From Paraphysomonas bandaiensis (Eukaryota; Protista; Chrysophyceae), in assembly GCA_965644295.1 (NCBI GenBank), contig CBFFRP010000346.1, positions 35,221 to 99,220 of the forward strand: DNA of 64,000 nucleotides, given 5' to 3'. The first letter of the stretch is position 1. Each line of letters opens with the position of its first letter. A model generated the notes under the pieces. The model had not been told where the DNA came from and did not search any database. It worked only from the letters and a program-made list of their open reading frames with translations. Both the position numbers and the translations under genes were made by a program. Positions 51,181 through 64,000 of the stretch are shown piece by piece.

Positions 51181-51802
51181 TAGTAGTGAATGTCTGCTTA
51201 TTAGCAATAGGCGTGTAAGAGTCAGAACTAATGTAGCAAAACAATTTATCTAACTACTGCTTAATAACTCTGATATCCTACTATTTGTCGTTTTGAAAGC
51301 TGCTTGTATTATGTCACCGGAAGCACCAAGGTGCAACCACCTTCGTTCTCTGTCCTTGAGGTGAACTAGCCCGGATGCTTGACTGTAGGAGGTAGTCCAA
51401 TACCCCGGACGCTCTTGAGGTGGGCGTATTCCAGGATGCTTGATTTTATCATGCAGCCCAATACCCCGGACGCTCTTGAGGTGGGCGTATTCCAGGATGC
51501 TTGATTTTATCATGCAGCCCAATACCCCGGACGCTCTTGAGGTGGGCAAATTCCCGAATGTGTGTTTCTTCATCAATGCCCAAAGACGTCTACACCAGTG
51601 ACACTAATTAGTGTTCCTTGTACCACACAAGCATTTGGCTACGAATGGGCAGGACAATATCTGCTGGCTATATATGCGGCTCACGTTAGTTTCTCGGAGA
51701 AATCTCTCGAGTCCGACTTTGTTGAAGGAGAAATTGTGTATACAGAAATGTTTTACATTCACTGACGACACAGTTTAGACGGGACATTACTATTTAAACA
51801 CA
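51181..51802. repeat. Unclassified dispersed repeat, copy D, containing a 61-bp tandem repeat (~51368-51547)
   Basis: Shares both ends with copy B; TACCCCGGACGCTCTTGAGGTGGGC recurs at 51401, 51462 and 51523. Confidence 0.8.
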
Positions 51803-51970: not shown

Positions 51971-54900
51971 CTACGGGTTATTTTCGTCGGCATATTTCCC
52001 ATTGTAAAAACACATGTCGCATACTCTAGATGGCTCCATCAGGCCAAGGCGGATAATAGGATGGCGATTGACGGAGCATGGGCCACAAACCAGTCCTCCA
52101 CAGCACCTACAGTTATATCTAGAGGTTTCAAATAAGAAGTGCCGGGAACAACATTTCTACACAACTCACCTCTCTTTGTACTCCTGCGCTTCCCCTCTGA
52201 AGGTAGAATGCCACGTGAAGCTGCTGCCGCAGCACTTGCAGCAAAGTGCCTCGTTATAGGGCATCCAGGGTGGGGGGCGACACGGCGCACGACGGTACGA
52301 CCGTACCTGATCAAAAGTCACAGGCATATACACATCCGATAAGCACACCAAACCTCCTGGAGCGCTTCGAATATACTCTTACTGGAGTGGTCACGGAATA
52401 TGTTTCCCTGTACCAGAATACGCCTGAGATCTGGAAAGTCCCGTGGAACAACTGCTGCATTGTAGAGGCCTCTCCATGCGTATATATGGACCAGTCTGCC
52501 AGGAAGCCACAATTGTATGACCTCTTGCTCATTGACTAACACGCACTCCTCTTGGTCCAAGCTACCATTTTCTGTGGAGTTTGAGTCAATCAGTGGCGGA
52601 ACCGCATCCACGGTGGGAAGAGTGTTGGGAGAGGCATCGGAGCCAGCTTCAGGGGTGTCCCTCCATCGCGGAGACCACAATGCAGTCGCTCGAGTGATTG
52701 CATCGTTCCAGTCTTGTTGGAGGTACTTGAAAACCCCTGACCTAAATGCGTTTACTTCCTTCATCAGCAGCCTACAGCAATCAAGTATGACCCAACGGAG
52801 CTGAATTACACAACTTACGCTGTACCTTATAGAAGCAGGAGTGACACGCGCTATGAGGTCATCGTGCAAAATAATAGTCGTCACGAATTCTTTCATTTCA
52901 TCAGCAGTATGTGCGTCTACAAAAGATGGCGTTCCATACGAGTAGCACTGCACATTCGGGATTGAGACCGATCGCAGCATGTATGCCACCAGTGCAGCTA
53001 CTGCGCCCCCAAGAGAATGTCCAACGATCTGGATACGGAATCCTTGCTCTGCCAGTGTGACCAGGCACGCCCCAAGTTCCACGAGTATAAACATCGCAGA
53101 CCGATAGATACCACCACATGCGTATGTAGTCGTTGAAGAAGTTGGAAGCCATTCCCACTCCTGCATGACACTTCAGAAAACAACAAGACGATGCATTGGA
53201 ATGTCACCTGAGACGACCCTATCTGTGATGCAATACAGATATCCGACCCAGAAGCCGATGCACTTCCGATATAACTGTCGGAGTGGTAAACCCCATATAT
53301 GGCCCGCATGATCTCCTCCTCCGGGGGTGGAAATGCGGTAGGAGCGTTGCGTATATCTGTAACCACATCTTGCACTGAGTGTGTTCCGCGGATAACCAGG
53401 ACCACCTCTTTGTTGTCGCCATATTCCGGTGATTCGTCCAGTTGACAATGTTTGGGCTCACCTGCACCTGGTGACTTCAATACTTCTGAGAGTTTTCCAT
53501 CCTCTCCTACAGTCCACCTGCCTGCAGCTGAGGTGGTAGCATACAACCCAAATGCTGGTTGTTCTGGCTCCGAGGTCTCCTGCATACAGAGGAGTGTATA
53601 TCCTTGGGTGGACGCCATGCGCTGACATTCAGCAGGCTTATCTTCATATGCAATCATCAGTGCGAGTGATGAGTAGCTGCGCAGGACACGTCAATGCGAC
53701 ACACACACTGGCGAATGCTGTACCGTATAATGATGTCTAATTCGTCATCTAATAAATCGTCGCATACAGGAGGCTCGTCAGGACAGGGAATGTAGTCGGC
53801 GGCATGCGTATTATTACGTGAAGGCGTCCAGTGAGCCTTGTATTCATCATCAGGATTGCATCCCCTCAGCCCGCGGTCGATGGCAAGCTTGTAGTAGATA
53901 CAAGCTGTCAACTCATGCAAACTAATAGGGTAGTGTTGATCCTACGTACAGCAATAGCAACATAACAAAGTTATTCATTCATACCAGCCATATGAGGAGA
54001 GGAAAGCATATATTAGCGTAAAACAACTATCACTAACCAGTCCGCTAATTTTCTTTAGAGTTTCAACAGCCTCCACGAAATCCTGTCGCAGCAGTACCCC
54101 AGCTAGCCCGGACATGCCGTACCTGCACCTCCATATCACATGTATAGCAATGGAAAGTAGAACGAAAGTTATAACCTCACCTACGCAGAATCTCCACCGT
54201 CTCCACAATAAGCACAGCAGGATAATTCTGCATAAGCGCTGTCTTAACTACAAACAGAGTGCCATCCACGACTCGAAGCGCCTTGTCCACACCTCTATCG
54301 ACACCACGTGACATATATGGGATCAATGAACCCGATAGAAAGTCGCGTACTCTCAGTAGCCGCCACTGAACTCGGTCCATACGAGCCTGGGAATCCAATC
54401 ACCATACAACAGTACGTCTACTATACATTCTTACCTCACTGTCAATAATCTGCTCACATTCCAAGCATACCCTCACTGGATCTGTGTATCCATATTTCAT
54501 TATCCGTCGAGAGGACTGAGAATGCTCCCGGCAGAAGGACCTTCCTGCATAATAAACTATTATCACGAGTAATAAAACTAGGACAGAAACACACCGCAGT
54601 GCCTGCAGTGGTGTCTGAATAGTGAGATTGAAAATTCCCGCTGACAAGAGTAGCAAACTGTGTCTTCTTGAAACGCAGGAGGGGTAATGAGGTCGGTAAT
54701 GATGGCAGCAGCCTCGGAACTTCCAGCATCAAATGCAGCAATGAGGGCATCAAGTGCACTGAACCTGTCCAGGACAAGACGAGTGGACGGTTTCGGTACT
54801 GGGGTCGATATGGGAGCGGAAAGCACACTATCAGTACTAGTGCGATAAGCACCCTTACCAGAATGCTGAGAGAGAGAAAGTGTGACGGTCTCTGCACCCA

Positions 54901-55874
54901 CAGGCATGTGGTTAGTGGGAGGCAATGAGCCAGATGACCTATCGGACACGCTGTCTCGGGTACAATGCAGAAGTTGACGGTGAGCCCAAGAGAGAGTTGA
55001 GAACCGTGCCCGTCGCTTAATTGTCGCAGAATCCAAGGAAAGACTATGCGCTGGGTCTGGTCGAATGATATTCTTGCTGCTTCGCACAGACCTACGGTGG
55101 ACTACCTCTGGATCGTCTGATATCATCAGCGTCGCATACCTGCAACGCATAGGTTCGTGTCACTTTACAAACTAGTAATACTAACACTACTAACCACTTC
55201 GTGTATGTCCTTGTTCGATCCACTGCAAAATAACATGACTCGATAATTACATCGCCAACTGCTTGGAGGGTCGAAAACCGTTTTAGGGCACCATCCGCCT
55301 GTTTAACTGCTGAAGTGATACTTTCTTTGGTGGCATTCGTTAGTGGCTTACTATGCTTGGTCACAATGTCATATCCTCTTTTGGTAACAAAACCTGCTCC
55401 TTGTACAACATATCTGTTCACAAACTTGACCAGAGCGGAAGTAATTGCATAAACTCGCCCCCTAATATGTAGAACTCCAGTTTCACGTGAAGGAGGATCA
55501 CTAAGTGTCGGCTCCGTGTCATGGACAAGGACCTCGGATACATTGTCATTTGCCTCGAAATCATTCGAAGACATGTCTATCACGGCAACTTCACAGTCAG
55601 AGCCTGACATATCGACAACATGGTGATTCATTGCTCTGTCCACACATAATGAACCATTGAGGTCAATGTCGTCGAATTCCCTCTGAGGAAACTCCTCCAC
55701 AGACTGAACAACATCACCCGACAAATTCAATAACCCGGCATACCCAGCTATAGTGGAGTTCATACCCTCAGCATCATCCGCTGGTGTGTAGGAAACATGT
55801 GTTGTATCTGTATCAGTGCCTGTGTCCTCGGCCCCATCATCCAGACCTGCAAACCACTGATACTCCTCAGTCAT
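51971..55874 (-). CDS. Class-3 (DAG-lipase-like) lipase flanked by two FYVE zinc fingers, multi-exon
   Basis: CYSCQREFSISLFRHHCRHCG..FC..VRVCLEC; VIRGTHS..DVVTD, GHSLGGAVA, HDDLIARV, PGRLVH, DH; C-terminal WMP..CKCC..YNCRCCGGLVCGPCS..RVCDMC. Confidence 0.88.
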
Positions 55875-56306
55875 TATATCAAACAATTACATAAGATGGA
55901 TTGATTATGATAGTCGACATCTGAAGTGTTATATATACATGTATGTATGTATGTAGAGATGAGAAGAAACATGTACAAGAAAGAAAAGAAACATCTCAAA
56001 AACATCCAACAATACTGCTGTAGGATAACAAGAATACGGCCGTACTGTAAGCTGACGACTTCAACAAGAGAAGTATACCACATGATAAAAAAAATTATTC
56101 TGTAAAATGTGGAAGGTACCGTACTCAAGCCCGCACCATAATGGTGTGGAACTATATAAGTGGTGATGATGAGTGACCAGTGGTATGTATGGTGTTGCTG
56201 GTGAGTAATAGATCCAGGGAGGTGGGTGTTGAAGGAGGAGCTCTCTCATCACAGCATGGTATCATACATACAGAACATAATAACAGCGAGAACATATCAT
56301 AGTAGC

Positions 56307-57233
56307 ATGGAATCAACTACCACGGAATCAACTACCACGGAATCAACTACCACGGAATCAACTACCACAGGGGGCATTAGAAAAGTCGGTGATGGGGAAA
56401 CCAAAAATCGTAACTCCTCTGCGTTAGCTCAGTTTGCGAAGTACTTGGAGATGCGGTTCGACGGGAAGAAGAGGTATAAGGAACTCATAGACAGTGATAT
56501 AAATGTAGAACTATTTCATCAATGTTTCGGTGGCTTTTTGATCGATCACGCCGTCCATGGAACAACGAAGAAGCCTTTGACCCTAGGTACTGCTTGGCAG
56601 TATTTGTCAGACACGAAGACTGCGCTGACGAAGCGATTTAAAAGAAATGAGTTATTAAGCAGCTCCAATGAGCTGTGGTACAAAGATGTGAGAGCGGCAG
56701 TATCAAAGCATATTATCAAGCGGTGTATCGCACAAGGAGTGCGTATATCAGAGAAAACAAGTCCAGTGGGGAAAGAACTAATGAAGCGCATAGGTGAATA
56801 CATTATACATCGGGCATCTGATTTCTCCGGTAAGTGGACATACTTCACATATCTATGATTTACTGTATACCCTATGGTAGACAACGTCAACAAACAGAAA
56901 AAACTAAATCGAGTATTGACTAAAGGACTCGGCCTATTGTACGATGACGAGAAACGTTTTCTTGATGAGCCGAAACCCTGTATGGCAAGTCAGTCTACTT
57001 CGTACAGAGAATGGAAGAGTAATTTAAAATGCATAGCTGAAAAGGTTGAATTGCGTGTTATTGTTGATTTATTTGGTCAGGAAAATTACGACAAGTTTCA
57101 CCCCAAAAAAAAAGCCTCTAAGAAATACATAAACAGTATATATGATGCAATGAGTGCACGAAGGGACAGTGATGGTAACATTATTCCAAGGACAAAGAAA
57201 AGGAAACTTCAGTCTGATGTTAGTAATCTGTAG
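56307..57233 (+). CDS. Crypton/tyrosine-recombinase-like protein lacking a recognisable catalytic domain (2 exons, ~291 aa), left copy
   Basis: LTLGTAWQYLSDTKTALTKRF...WYKDVR...KRCIAQG..SEKTSPV resembles the N-terminal core-binding region of stramenopile Crypton YRs; 51-bp GTAAGT...TAG intron (56830-56880) joins the two ORFs in frame. Confidence 0.55.
56309..56368 (+). repeat. 15-bp tandem repeat x4 (GGAATCAACTACCAC, encodes ESTTT); mirrored at ~61039-61098
   Basis: Directly visible in the sequence. Confidence 0.95.
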
Positions 57234-57759
57234 AATGCCAATATATGTATTCATTTATAACCACTCCATCAACTTTTTATAATGTACCCTTATAATTAAT
57301 GATTCATTAGTAATTGGAATACATCGTATCATTATTTACAGAGCATACAACAGTATAATCAACCATTACAGCGTTCAGCATTTTATTATTCGACACAGTC
57401 TGATGTTAGTAATCTGTAGAATGCCTATATGTATTCATTTATAACCACTCCATCAACTTTTTATAATGTACCCTTATAATTAATGATTCATTAGTAATTG
57501 GAATACATCGTATCATTATTTACAGAGCATACAACAGTATAATCAACCATTACAGCGTGCAGCATTTTATTATTCGACACAGTCTGATGTTAGTAATCTG
57601 TAGAATGCCTATATGTATTCATTTATAACCACTCCATCAACTTTTTATACTGTACCCTTATAATTAATGATTCATTAGTAATTGGAATACATCGTATCAT
57701 TATTTACAGAGCATACAACAGTATAATCAACCATCACAGCGTTCAGCATTTTATTATTC
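57210..57759. repeat. ~185-bp tandem repeat x3 (mirrored at ~59651-60200)
   Basis: CAGTCTGATGTTAGTAATCTGTAGAATGCC at 57210, 57396 and 57580. Confidence 0.93.
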
Positions 57760-58128
57760 CACACCGTTCAGAATTCTTATCACATACAGCCATACTGCAT
57801 ACCCTTACACAACATGACACATATTCACTGCAAGATGGAACAGGGGCAGCCGGGCGCTTGTGTCGCTTAGGCATCCCTCTTGCACCGGTAAGTATAAACG
57901 TCATTGCGCCTACAACAGCATAATAAACCATCACAGCCTTCAGCATTTTATTATTCCACACCGTTCAGAATTCTTATCACATACAGCCATACTGCATACC
58001 CTTACACAACATGACACATATTCACTGCAAGATGGTACAGGGGCAGCCGGGCGCTTGTGTCGCTTAGGCATCCCTCTTGCACCGGTAAGTATAAACGTCA
58101 TTGCGCCTACAACAGCATAATAAACCAT
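57728..58128. repeat. 197-bp tandem repeat x2 (mirrored at ~59282-59682)
   Basis: CCATCACAGC(G/C)TTCAGCATTTTATTATTCCACACCG at 57731 and 57928. Confidence 0.93.
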
Positions 58129-58652
58129 GACAACATTCAGCATATCATATACCATCACACAACATAGTGCATGCATGATATACAGCCTTCTATTCCTTCA
58201 AATGTACCACTTCTCATCTCTCTACATACCTGACACTTTAAATAGGATGATGGGAGCATGATGCTCCCACCTGGAATTCAATCATTGATATCCATATCAA
58301 ATCACTTCATACCATAATATACAGCCCTTCACAGTTCCTCTCCATACAGCCTTATAAACCTCGTCCAGTAACTGCATATCTCATCTCACAGTTTCATGAA
58401 ATAAGATGGTAGCAACATGTTATCACCTATCATTCAAGCACTCATTAACGTGTATCTGCTGCATATGGCTGCCTCGTCATATTACTATATACATATACTC
58501 GATGCATGTGATATGATGCACTATGCTATGATGCACTCTGCTGATTGGATCACTCGATGGGCGCACTTGCTGTGCGGCCTTTGTGTAAAAACAAGGGTGC
58601 GGGATCCCGCACCTGCGGTGCGGGCTAAATAATTTTTCCAGACAAGTTATAA

Positions 58653-61574
58653 GGGTGCGTTCGGTAGACCAAAAAAGTGCTGGATTTGCTCAAATTCGCT
58701 GGATTTCATCCATCCACTGGAATTTGGAAAATCTTACCGAACGCAAAAAAGCAAAATATGCTCATTTGCTGGAAAAATTATTTAGCCCGCACCGCAGGTG
58801 CGGGATCCCGCACCCTTGTTTTTACACAAAGGCCGCACAGCAAGTGCGCCCATCGAGTGATCCAATCAGCAGAGTGCATCATAGCATAGTGCATCATATC
58901 ACATGCATCGAGTATATGTATATAGTAATATGACGAGGCAGCCATATGCAGCAGATACACGTTAATGAGTGCTTGAATGATAGGTGATAACATGTTGCTA
59001 CCATCTTATTTCATGAAACTGTGAGATGAGATATGCAGTTACTGGACGAGGTTTATAAGGCTGTATGGAGAGGAACTGTGAAGGGCTGTATATTATGGTA
59101 TGAAGTGATTTGATATGGATATCAATGATTGAATTCCAGGTGGGAGCATCATGCTCCCATCATCCTATTTAAAGTGTCAGGTATGTAGAGAGATGAGAAG
59201 TGGTACATTTGAAGGAATAGAAGGCTGTATATCATGCATGCACTATGTTGTGTGATGGTATATGATATGCTGAATGTTGTCATGGTTTATTATGCTGTTG
59301 TAGGCGCAATGACGTTTATACTTACCGGTGCAAGAGGGATGCCTAAGCGACACAAGCGCCCGGCTGCCCCTGTACCATCTTGCAGTGAATATGTGTCATG
59401 TTGTGTAAGGGTATGCAGTATGGCTGTATGTGATAAGAATTCTGAACGGTGTGGAATAATAAAATGCTGAAGGCTGTGATGGTTTATTATGCTGTTGTAG
59501 GCGCAATGACGTTTATACTTACCGGTGCAAGAGGGATGCCTAAGCGACACAAGCGCCCGGCTGCCCCTGTTCCATCTTGCAGTGAATATGTGTCATGTTG
59601 TGTAAGGGTATGCAGTATGGCTGTATGTGATAAGAATTCTGAACGGTGTGGAATAATAAAATGCTGAACGCTGTGATGGTTGATTATACTGTTGTATGCT
59701 CTGTAAATAATGATACGATGTATTCCAATTACTAATGAATCATTAATTATAAGGGTACAGTATAAAAAGTTGATGGAGTGGTTATAAATGAATACATATA
59801 GGCATTCTACAGATTACTAACATCAGACTGTGTCGAATAATAAAATGCTGCACGCTGTAATGGTTGATTATACTGTTGTATGCTCTGTAAATAATGATAC
59901 GATGTATTCCAATTACTAATGAATCATTAATTATAAGGGTACATTATAAAAAGTTGATGGAGTGGTTATAAATGAATACATATAGGCATTCTACAGATTA
60001 CTAACATCAGACTGTGTCGAATAATAAAATGCTGAACGCTGTAATGGTTGATTATACTGTTGTATGCTCTGTAAATAATGATACGATGTATTCCAATTAC
60101 TAATGAATCATTAATTATAAGGGTACATTATAAAAAGTTGATGGAGTGGTTATAAATGAATACATATATTGGCATTCTACAGATTACTAACATCAGACTG
60201 AAGTTTCCTTTTCTTTGTCCTTGGAATAATGTTACCATCACTGTCCCTTCGTGCACTCATTGCATCATATATACTGTTTATGTATTTCTTAGAGGCTTTT
60301 TTTTTGGGGTGAAACTTGTCGTAATTTTCCTGACCAAATAAATCAACAATAACACGCAATTCAACCTTTTCAGCTATGCATTTTAAATTACTCTTCCATT
60401 CTCTGTACGAAGTAGACTGACTTGCCATACAGGGTTTCGGCTCATCAAGAAAACGTTTCTCGTCATCGTACAATAGGCCGAGTCCTTTAGTCAATACTCG
60501 ATTTAGTTTTTTCTGTTTGTTGACGTTGTCTACCATAGGGTATACAGTAAATCATAGATATGTGAAGTATGTCCACTTACCGGAGAAATCAGATGCCCGA
60601 TGTATAATGTATTCACCTATGCGCTTCATTAGTTCTTTCCCCACTGGACTTGTTTTCTCTGATATACGCACTCCTTGTGCGATACACCGCTTGATAATAT
60701 GCTTTGATACTGCCGCTCTCACATCTTTGTACCACAGCTCATTGGAGCTGCTTAATAACTCATTTCTTTTAAATCGCTTCGTCAGCGCAGTCTTCGTGTC
60801 TGACAAATACTGCCAAGCAGTACCTAGGGTCAAAGGCTTCTTCGTTGTTCCATGGACGGCGTGATCGATCAAAAAGCCACCGAAACATTGAAATAGTTCT
60901 ACATTTATATCACTGTCTATGAGTTCCTTATACCTCTTCTTCCCGTCGAACCGCATCTCCAAGTACTTCGCAAACTGAGCTAACGCAGAGGAGTTACGAT
61001 TTTTGGTTTCCCCATCACCGACTTTTCTAATGCCCCCTGTGGTAGTTGATTCCGTGGTAGTTGATTCCGTGGTAGTTGATTCCGTGGTAGTTGATTCCAT
61101 GCTACTATGATATGTTCTCGCTGTTATTATGTTCTGTATGTATGATACCATGCTGTGATGAGAGAGCTCCTCCTTCAACACCCACCTCCCTGGATCTATT
61201 ACTCACCAGCAACACCATACATACCACTGGTCACTCATCATCACCACTTATATAGTTCCACACCATTATGGTGCGGGCTTGAGTACGGTACCTTCCACAT
61301 TTTACAGAAAAAATCCAGCGAAATTAGTTTCGTGTTTTGAGTCGAAAGACGATTCACTGGATTTTTGAGAAGTGCTGGATTTTTGAATCACGATTATACA
61401 TACAGTATATGCGTTAAATACACGTATACCGGATGTGGCAATCGTTCGGTAGTAAGCGCTATGCCCATTTGCTGGATTACCCAAATACAGTGCATTTTCA
61501 ACCAGTGGAATTTATCAAAAATCCAGCGAATGCAAATCCAGCACAAAAATCCATTGGATGAACCGAACGGGCCC
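58653..61574. mobile_element. PIF/Harbinger (Tourist-like) MITE of ~0.39 kb, interrupted by the right arm of the palindrome
   Basis: TAA on both sides (58650-58652, 61575-61577); TIRs GGGTGCGTTCGGT / rc GGGCCCGTTCGGT; repeated subterminal GCTGGATTT motifs in both halves. Confidence 0.85.
60177..61100 (-). CDS. Crypton/tyrosine-recombinase-like protein, right (inverted) copy
   Basis: Reverse complement of 56307-57233 minus one codon. Confidence 0.55.
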
Positions 61575-61891
61575 TAAAGAATAGAATTTTGTATTTTCAG
61601 TTTCGTACGATGAAAACCGTTTCAAGATATCCTACTTTAGGATATGTCCCTTCAAGATACTTCACAAAAATATGGAAATTGTTGGTGTTTGATGTTCGTT
61701 TGTTTGTTCTTTTTCATTCTTTTGACTTCTTTCAAATAAGTGAATGTACACACAACACACTCAGCCCTTTTCGTTACTTTTGTCATTTCCATTTTTGTGA
61801 TTGGTCATAAGTAAGATAGTTATATATACATACACATACATTAAGTATCGATTCAATGCGTCCAATATAATTGTGTATATCTGTGTGGAAT

Positions 61892-64000
61892 ATGGATGGG
61901 GAGAGGATTGTGTTTAGATTATCTAAAGCACTATGGAATGAGTGTAAAGAAAGAGAGGCGAAAAATATTGAAAAACTTGAAGCTAAAACTGATGAATATT
62001 GTCGCCATAAACTCATGCTAGACCATTCTCTCACCGTTGATCCCTCTGCGTGTTCACGGTGTGGTATATCGAAGACATGTAATCGATGTAGATCAATTCA
62101 TTATGGAGAAGATACATCTGAAGGGAAATCTAATGTCTCGGCTAAGAGGGGTAGGAAAAGACGACTTTCTGACGATAAATTAACGTTTCAGTCTCTTTTA
62201 CCTTTTCTCTTAAAGACTAGAGATAAGTTTCCTCCTGAGACTCTTCAATCTCCAGTTATTTCACAAGAGTATGAGCATTATGTCGGGGCGATTCCATCAC
62301 TTTCTTACGGCGACTTGTTGAACCACCTTATATCTGTCAGGGTGGAGTATGTACAGCGCTATATGCGTCCAATAGTTCAGAAATTGATGAGTCACAACAG
62401 GAATGGGGATGTGTATAACCACCCGGTTGATCCAGTTGCTCTAGGCCTCGTTGATTACTTTAAAGTAATTCCGAATCCAATGGATTTAGGTACAGTAAAA
62501 ACGAGGCTGCTTCAAGGTTACTATCACACAATTGAGTCGTGCGCAGACGACATAAGCCTAGTGTTTCGCAATGCAACTGTATATAATCATCCCGACCACA
62601 TTGTACATCAGTGTGCAAAACAACTAAACAATGAATTTCAAGAAGATCTGAAATCGTTGAGGGAACGCTTGAACAAAGAAGAGGAACGCAAAGCTCACCA
62701 TACTTGCGGTACATGTTTGGGTTCCAGTTGTGTTTTGTGCGGTGAAAAGTGTCTGAAATTTGAGCCAGCAATCCTTGTCTGTTATGGTACCTGTAGCCAA
62801 CGAATAAAGCGCAACGCGACGTACTATGTAGCACTTGACGGCGCGATGCTGTGGTGCCAAAAGTGCTACACTGGGTCTGGTCCGGTAATGGTTGAGTCTG
62901 CTGGGCCGGAGCACAAACCTCTACTCAAAAAAGATCTTATTAAGCGCCGGTTCGATGAAGAAGTGGTGGAACCTTGGGTAGAATGCTCTACGTGTCTTAG
63001 GCGGGTGCATCAAGTTTGTGGACTGTATAACCGCCTGCATGATGAGAGCGAAGTGGAAGAAGCAGGTGGCAAAGGGAGAGCGTTCCAGTGTCCATTATGT
63101 AAGCTTGAGGCGATTGGAGCCACTCCGAATGCGCCGAGTGGACATGTGACGGAGGCCGGGGTGGTCAAGCGATTGCGAGCGGAGTCGGTTGAGGGACGAG
63201 GAGAACGTGTGCGTCGGCGGGCCAATCGGCAGGACTTGGAGGAAAGGAGACAAATAGACAGCACGCCTGTCACAGAAGTACAAACGGACTACGATCGCAG
63301 CTCAAGTGATGACTCAGAACATGAACAAACTTGTTTTGACGATGAAGAGGGAAGTGTGCCAGTTGTGAAGACCATTCCATCACAACATACTGGTGCGAGT
63401 GATACGTCTCACGAGGCCGATGGTGGTATGGAGGAGGATGACGAAGATGAGGTTAGGTCCCTCTCTTCTCTTGGACTGTCATCAGATGTTGAACCAGTTA
63501 GGGCCTGTGATCAGTGGCGGGCGTCAAGCCTTCCTCGGACTCGACTTAGCGACTTCCTTGAAGCTATGGTTGAAGAGAGACTGCGGCAGTGTGGAGAGAA
63601 GGATTTAATGGAATCTCTGACTATCCGCATGACATCCAACTGCATGCATAATTTCGAGGTCCCAGATGTCATCACTGACAACCTCCCAAACGCTCATGGC
63701 AATCGTGTGCAGCAGTACTTTATGTACAAGCAGAAATGTATCTTGTTGTTTCAACGAATTGATGGCATAGATGTGTGTCTTTTCTGTCTTTATGTGCAAG
63801 AATTTGACGAGCGATGTCCTGAGCCTAACAGGTCGAAAGTATACATTGCGTATCTTGACTCTGTGGAGTACTTCCGTCCACGATCGCTGCGCACGACGGT
63901 CTATCATGAGATCCTGGTGGCATATTTGAAGTGGTCACAGGCCCGTGGATTTAAACAGGGACATATATGGGCATGTCCCCCGCAGCGTGGAGACAATTTT
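61892..64000 (+). CDS. CBP/p300-family histone acetyltransferase (bromodomain, RING/PHD, KAT11), 5' part; runs off the window and is absent from the ORF track
   Basis: Open frame from ATG at 61892: HPVDPVALGLVDYFKVIPNPMDLGTVK; CGEKCLKFEP; WVECSTCLRRVHQVC; KCILLFQRIDGIDVCLF..YVQEF..VYIAYLDSVEYFRP..RTTVYHEIL..HIWACPP. Confidence 0.93.
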   Translation, partial: MDGERIVFRLSKALWNECKEREAKNIEKLEAKTDEYCRHKLMLDHSLTVDPSACSRCGISKTCNRCRSIHYGEDTSEGKSNVSAKRGRKRRLSDDKLTFQSLLPFLLKTRDKFPPETLQSPVISQEYEHYVGAIPSLSYGDLLNHLISVRVEYVQRYMRPIVQKLMSHNRNGDVYNHPVDPVALGLVDYFKVIPNPMDLGTVKTRLLQGYYHTIESCADDISLVFRNATVYNHPDHIVHQCAKQLNNEFQEDLKSLRERLNKEEERKAHHTCGTCLGSSCVLCGEKCLKFEPAILVCYGTCSQRIKRNATYYVALDGAMLWCQKCYTGSGPVMVESAGPEHKPLLKKDLIKRRFDEEVVEPWVECSTCLRRVHQVCGLYNRLHDESEVEEAGGKGRAFQCPLCKLEAIGATPNAPSGHVTEAGVVKRLRAESVEGRGERVRRRANRQDLEERRQIDSTPVTEVQTDYDRSSSDDSEHEQTCFDDEEGSVPVVKTIPSQHTGASDTSHEADGGMEEDDEDEVRSLSSLGLSSDVEPVRACDQWRASSLPRTRLSDFLEAMVEERLRQCGEKDLMESLTIRMTSNCMHNFEVPDVITDNLPNAHGNRVQQYFMYKQKCILLFQRIDGIDVCLFCLYVQEFDERCPEPNRSKVYIAYLDSVEYFRPRSLRTTVYHEILVAYLKWSQARGFKQGHIWACPPQRGDNF

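Follow-up and report, generated by a model that had tools for sequence, protein, structure and literature searches.

A 5.2-kb transposon palindrome in Paraphysomonas bandaiensis as a probable double insertion of a recently active Crypton

Introduction

The question raised by the locus described here is how a 5.2-kb palindrome of transposon sequence came to lie between two divergent host genes of the chrysophyte Paraphysomonas bandaiensis, and whether it silences the family to which its arms belong. The palindrome is contained in a 64,000-nt stretch of contig CBFFRP010000346.1 (assembly GCA_965644295.1, positions 35,221 to 99,220 of the forward strand), which is called the window below. A first-pass annotation, made from the sequence alone, had described two convergent copies of a defective transposon and had proposed that they act like maize Mu killer, a rearranged transposon that silences its own family. 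Our analysis indicates that the palindrome probably consists of two separately inserted copies of a recently active Crypton, a transposon whose sole enzyme is a tyrosine recombinase, while a silencing function appears unlikely.

Results

Arms of the palindrome

In the assembly, the arms occupy 56101-58638 on the + strand and 58772-61306 on the - strand, which are the true limits of the element. Their alignment contained no mismatch and only one 3-nt insertion, located in the left arm at 56516-56518, in agreement with the first-pass description of two arms of ~2.54 kb that are identical except for one 3-bp indel. The open reading frame (ORF) map also bore out that the ORFs of both arms face inward, and each arm proved to be a whole deletion derivative without a catalytic domain (2538 nt on the left, 2535 nt on the right), as expected for convergent copies of a defective transposon. 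The 127-bp arm spacing that had been given is correct for the gap between the complementary stretches but not for the distance between the elements, whose 3' ends lie 133 nt apart (58639-58771); the two values differ because both 3' flanks start with CAG by chance. The tandem arrays inside the arms are mirrored (15x4, 184x3 and 197x2.2). Unit-specific variants of these repeats do occur in both arms, as the earlier description held, but they are present in every dispersed copy of the family and therefore establish no link between the two arms; hence, they were rejected as proof of an inverted duplication.

The arms derive from a new Crypton family

The arms are the 2.54-kb derivative of an element of ~3.85 kb that carries one gene with a 58-nt intron, and a public contig (L075) lacks exactly these 58 nt. 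An end-pattern search of the genome counted 40 3' ends and 44 5' ends, corresponding to ~40 copies, and a genome search found twelve 2.5-kb copies that are 99-100% alike, plus many longer ones. The element has no long terminal inverted repeats (TIRs) or long terminal repeats. All copies end in TTTTTC and are preceded by a variable TTTTTC-like host word, without further duplication; a TTTTTC-type core was found at both ends of 13 copies, and a single core in empty sites.

For the recombinase, searches were made with exon 2 or with the public protein P0001, the exons being joined for description only. The protein search retrieved about 560 relatives, and the residues R216, K244, R324, W348 and Y359 were invariant or nearly so among 45 of them. 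A model of the full-length protein (pLDDT, the predicted local distance difference test, of 92) had its best matches in Cre/Tre along its length (template modelling score ~0.53), so the full protein is predicted to fold like Cre. A Pfam search with the recombinase exon and a sequence search of the PDB gave nothing significant. In the sections consulted of the account by Kojima and Jurka (2011, PMC3212892), Cryptons are characterized by one tyrosine recombinase and terminal direct repeats of 4-6 nt. Because the element possesses both, it fits the definition of a Crypton with a tyrosine recombinase as its sole enzyme, and we regard it as a new Crypton family. The 3' ends also carry overlapping GC-rich hairpins (58596-58626, + strand, just inside the 3' end, mirrored at ~58784-58814), for which a Helitron/Helentron reading was rejected in view of the Cre-like protein. 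Compared with the full element, the arms have lost 1306 nt, and with them residues ~196-621; therefore, the copies in the window are non-autonomous.

Two insertions at separate target sites

Each arm is bordered by a target word of its own. The left copy (56101-58638, + strand) follows the host core TTATTC (56095-56100, + strand), an imperfect match to the element core TTTTTC at 58633-58638. The right copy (58772-61306, - strand) lies within a miniature inverted-repeat transposable element (MITE), and its target core TTTTTC (61307-61312, - strand) is part of that MITE. The left part of the MITE, which forms most of the loop (58653-58771, + strand), and its right part (61307-61574, + strand, then TAA at 61575-61577) rejoin into 387 nt that show 1-3 differences from the intact copies L032, L034 and L035, and the right arm is therefore a clean insertion into the MITE. 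What remains of the loop is 14 nt of host sequence (58639-58652, without strand), whose last three letters, TAA, are the left target duplication of the MITE. Being short, non-coding and multi-copy, with terminal repeats and a TAA/TTA duplication, this MITE has the traits of the PIF/Harbinger (Tourist-like) type. It resembles that type in its length of 387 nt, its GGG...CCC ends, its TAA/TTA duplication and its several near-identical copies, but differs in that its terminal repeats are imperfect.

Public read runs were examined over the repeat-free interval 58150-58800. In X5, a public DNA run of a sample with a different organism label, a 487-nt contig (contig 20) leads from the left flank into the spacer without the element, joining the flank to 58639 with the letters TTATTC. 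This empty left site is intact, with host DNA neither lost nor duplicated. The junction between the MITE and the right copy is present in a 52-nt contig of the same run (contig 21), and the filled left junction was not seen at the depth of X5. The filled left 3' junction occurs in record 14 of run X3, with 26 letters on the element side, below the 31-letter threshold. Because X5 combines an empty left site with a filled right junction, the two insertions were most likely successive, the simplest order being MITE, right copy, left copy.

The relation of the arms to the rest of the family is consistent with this. Dispersed copies on three further contigs (L003, L004 and L005) match the right arm exactly, and the left arm alone has the private 3-nt insertion. 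The arms are no more alike to each other than to dispersed copies, and their near identity simply reflects the youth of the family. The left flank (53000-56098) was single-copy in the genome search. Overall, these results indicate that the palindrome is quite likely a double insertion of a recently active Crypton; in this reading, the structure itself is real but ordinary.

The formation of the palindrome can be pictured in three steps. A Harbinger-like MITE would have entered the short interval between the two divergent genes. A 2.54-kb non-autonomous Crypton, for which the 3.85-kb copies supplied the tyrosine recombinase in trans, would then have integrated at TTTTTC within the MITE, and a second copy of the same derivative would later have integrated at TTATTC in the opposite orientation, 133 nt from the 3' end of the first. 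Both integrations may have used a circular intermediate with a crossover in the 5-6-nt core. The palindrome would probably be a by-product of these events, young and unstable.

A second tail-to-tail pair

Another facing pair was found at C58:213317-218827 (L070), where a full-length copy and a 1525-nt copy lie 45 nt apart; they are two different derivatives at natural target words. The 45-nt spacer is a piece of a third repeat family (intact in L073 and L074) with natural target words at both edges, and its interpretation as a Tc1/mariner-like remnant was rejected, as it belongs to this third repeat. The number of pairs expected by chance is 0.001 under random placement, or 0.01 if one tenth of the genome is open. 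Of ~16 copies of the third repeat, only one is flanked on the left by a Crypton 5' end, a pattern that favours a local effect over a sequence hot spot. The second pair thus gives a modest hint, suggesting that the Crypton tends to insert near a resident 3' end. In the window, ten letters at the 3' junction of the left copy (58638-58647) also match the start of the third repeat (L073/L074), probably by chance.

The surroundings of the C58 pair involve a further transposon. Each of its 5' flanks consists of the outermost 43 nt of a Tc1/mariner-like TIR. A 3.38-kb Tc1/IS630-like element is present at C32:44246-47621 (L071); it is bounded by 191-nt TIRs and carries a DDE ORF together with another ORF in the opposite direction. 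The TTTTTC at positions 38-43 of the L071 TIR adjoins Cryptons at C58 (twice), C111 and C433 (twice), and the inner TIR does so at C259. At this last locus (L076 and L077, C259:4316-5879), a copy that resembles the 1525-nt C58 derivative in end structure and approximate length has the reciprocal flanks, namely the third repeat on its 5' side and mariner interior on its 3' side. A reciprocal product with mariner interior joined directly to the third repeat was not found, the C259 locus having a Crypton in between. The flank exchange between C58 and C259 may reflect ectopic recombination, a cointegrate or a mis-join.

A separate observation concerns C545 (L082:142-4728), which contains a perfect inverted repeat with 1699-nt arms 1189 nt apart. 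The outer end of each arm is formed by a 300-nt copy (94%) of the Crypton 3' end, and the repeat surrounds host-like coding DNA with a sulfotransferase-like motif (recognized by eye); it is possibly an inverted duplication bounded by Crypton ends.

Alternative origins of the palindrome

Several points weigh against a double Crypton insertion. The two junction contigs of X5 cannot be phased, so the order right-then-left is one that we only infer; the public runs yielded no read or contig across both arms within 58150-58800, and it is the assembly only that places both insertions on one molecule. No donor can be assigned to the left copy. The pair statistic was drawn up post hoc from only two pairs, and the swapped 5' flanks of the C58 pair bespeak a more complex history there. 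As for the enzyme, K321 occupies the H position of the R-H-R-Y tetrad, and a Pfam search with the recombinase protein itself gave no match, including none to GCR1_C.

Some of these points would suit an assembly product, in which real insertions from separate homologues or cell lineages were merged into one sequence, or polishing made the arms more alike. Apart from the missing spanning record, such an origin would agree with the position of the palindrome only 2.7 kb from the contig end (window position 64000), with contig C18 (L052, C18:1-1790), which starts at 61311, at the right arm's outer edge, and shares the final 2.7 kb of the window's contig, and with the reciprocal flank swaps of C58 and C259, which indicate that family copies can be mis-joined or recombined. 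However, the four target-site joints are precise and have different outer flanks, unlike those of a fold-back chimera; a fold-back or amplification chimera was rejected on the grounds of these four distinct junctions and the unique outer flanks. Moreover, the filled junctions are found in public runs, the right one in X5 and the left one, below threshold, in X3, and the private 3-nt insertion speaks against full homogenisation. We consider an assembly product to be quite improbable. A one-step inverted duplication of a single copy, by template switch or aberrant transposition, would account for two nearly identical arms of the same derivative, and the possible inverted duplication at C545, bounded by Crypton 3' fragments, could be its parallel. 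Yet both arms are complete at their two ends and have separate target cores, the empty left site in X5 is clean, and the arms are no more alike than either is to the dispersed copies; this origin is largely refuted already and deserves very little credence. The double insertion remains the reading that we prefer.

The silencing-hairpin question

According to the first-pass annotation, transcription across the spacer would yield a long double-stranded RNA (dsRNA), a possible source of small interfering RNAs against the transposon family. Part of this reasoning holds, as the geometry of the arms would let a centre-crossing transcript fold back into a stem of up to 2.5 kb, and RNA interference (RNAi) genes are present: the genome encodes two Argonautes and a Dicer-like protein with a pair of RNase III domains, a pathway that would be available to a hairpin. 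Read-through into some copy does occur, since one public spliced contig of the element begins in flanking host sequence. RNA contigs of the element reach to 182 nt from its 3' end (X12) or to the end itself (X11, whose RNA status is a guess). The function, on the contrary, found no such backing. Both host genes point away from the palindrome and none reads in; X11 and X12 cover the 3' part of the element, but neither has an RNA contig over 58656-58800, a weak test given that these runs come from other strain variants that may lack the locus, that X11 may be DNA and that rare forms are lost from contigs. Judging from its near-identical intact copies, the family appears freshly active, the left copy is missing from another sample, and the hairpin read-through model is disputed even for Mu killer (PMC3440606). 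A Mu-killer-like locus, whose small interfering RNAs would silence the Crypton family in trans, is therefore unlikely in our judgement.

An extended version of this idea is a built-in bias by which a new copy lands ~50-150 nt from a resident 3' end and faces it, for example if recombinase bound at that end captured an incoming circle. Palindromes would then be routine, and read-through dsRNA would limit the family as a self-made Mu-killer-like brake. We regard this as a doubtful proposition.

Other features of the arms and the neighbourhood

Within the left arm, exon 1 of the recombinase gene, encoding the N-terminal core-binding part, spans 56307-56829 (+ strand), with the intron donor at 56830 and its mirror starting from 61100 on the - strand. 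The junction of the 1306-nt deletion lies at 56866-56867 (+ strand), where the intron acceptor and all catalytic residues were removed, and the C-terminal coding remainder follows at 56867-57233 (+ strand). Splicing to an alternative acceptor at 56880 would preserve the frame, giving a 51-nt intron (56830-56880) and a 291-aa product; such a protein, with the DNA-binding part and without the catalytic domain, could possibly be dominant-negative. Many copies (L006, L007, L008 and L016-L019) have 8 rather than 9 A in a coding run at arm position ~1002-1010, which shifts the last codons and may be a real variant or a homopolymer error. The 184-nt (x3) and 197-nt (x2.2) tandem arrays (57210-58143, + strand, mirrored at 59267-60200) are fixed in the family. 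A 10-nt subterminal inverted repeat (56128-56137, + strand, partner at 58617-58626) is a candidate arm site of the recombinase. An Rfam search gave no match.

The position of the palindrome between divergent FYVE-lipase and CBP/p300 genes, as originally annotated, was substantiated by domain matches on the - and + strands, both genes being directed away from it. The FYVE/class-3 lipase gene (52318-55886, - strand, 5' limit inferred) has FYVE and Lipase_3 matches, and a Pfam search with the ORF at 55092-55886, its 5' part, gave no match. The CBP/p300-like gene (61892-64000, + strand) has bromodomain, RING, PHD and HAT_KAT11 matches and an in-frame ATG. Just past the 3' end of the lipase gene lies a 61-nt tandem repeat (51397-51554, 2.6 copies, 97% alike).

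Discussion

To our knowledge, the movement of Cryptons has so far been inferred from sequence rather than shown, and the locus is therefore valuable for direct tests. It offers a test bed in which a young Crypton, its ends, its target core and its empty sites are known to the base; in addition, samples differ in the presence of a copy, and the ~40 copies include two tail-to-tail pairs. Both the circle model and insertion near a resident end can be addressed directly here, as can the possibility that RNAi in a marine protist is set off by a naturally occurring palindrome.

In the sections consulted of the Crypton account (PMC3212892), stramenopile-type Cryptons share with the present family a single tyrosine-recombinase gene, the absence of long terminal repeats, direct end repeats of 5-6 nt, a length of ~3-4 kb, the lack of a GCR1_C domain and the existence of non-autonomous derivatives. 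The core differs, being TTTT(T)C here versus TATGG in most CryptonS elements, as does the K at the H position of the tetrad, the likeness being one to the description of CryptonS and not to named CryptonS proteins. Tail-to-tail pairs are not mentioned in those sections.

Mu killer arose by rearrangement of a single MuDR and carries the same end twice; its dominant silencing effect is proven, and doubt has been cast on the hairpin read-through model for it (PMC3440606). Like the palindrome in the window, it lies between two host genes as a long inverted repeat of a transposon with a deletion, with the 5' ends outward. The analogy fails for the origin, however, since the window has two whole copies, each with both ends, at separate target sites, and it has no host gene reading in.

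By analogy, the closest known phenomenon would be the formation of transposable element dimers by double insertion during an activity burst, among which inverted dimers are rare and strain-limited (McGurk and Barbash 2018, PMC5932611). In both cases, two separately inserted copies adjoin each other and date from a burst of activity. Those dimers share one target site, whereas the two copies of each Crypton pair lie at different words, separated by 133 nt in the window and by 45 nt at C58, and the enzyme here is a tyrosine recombinase.

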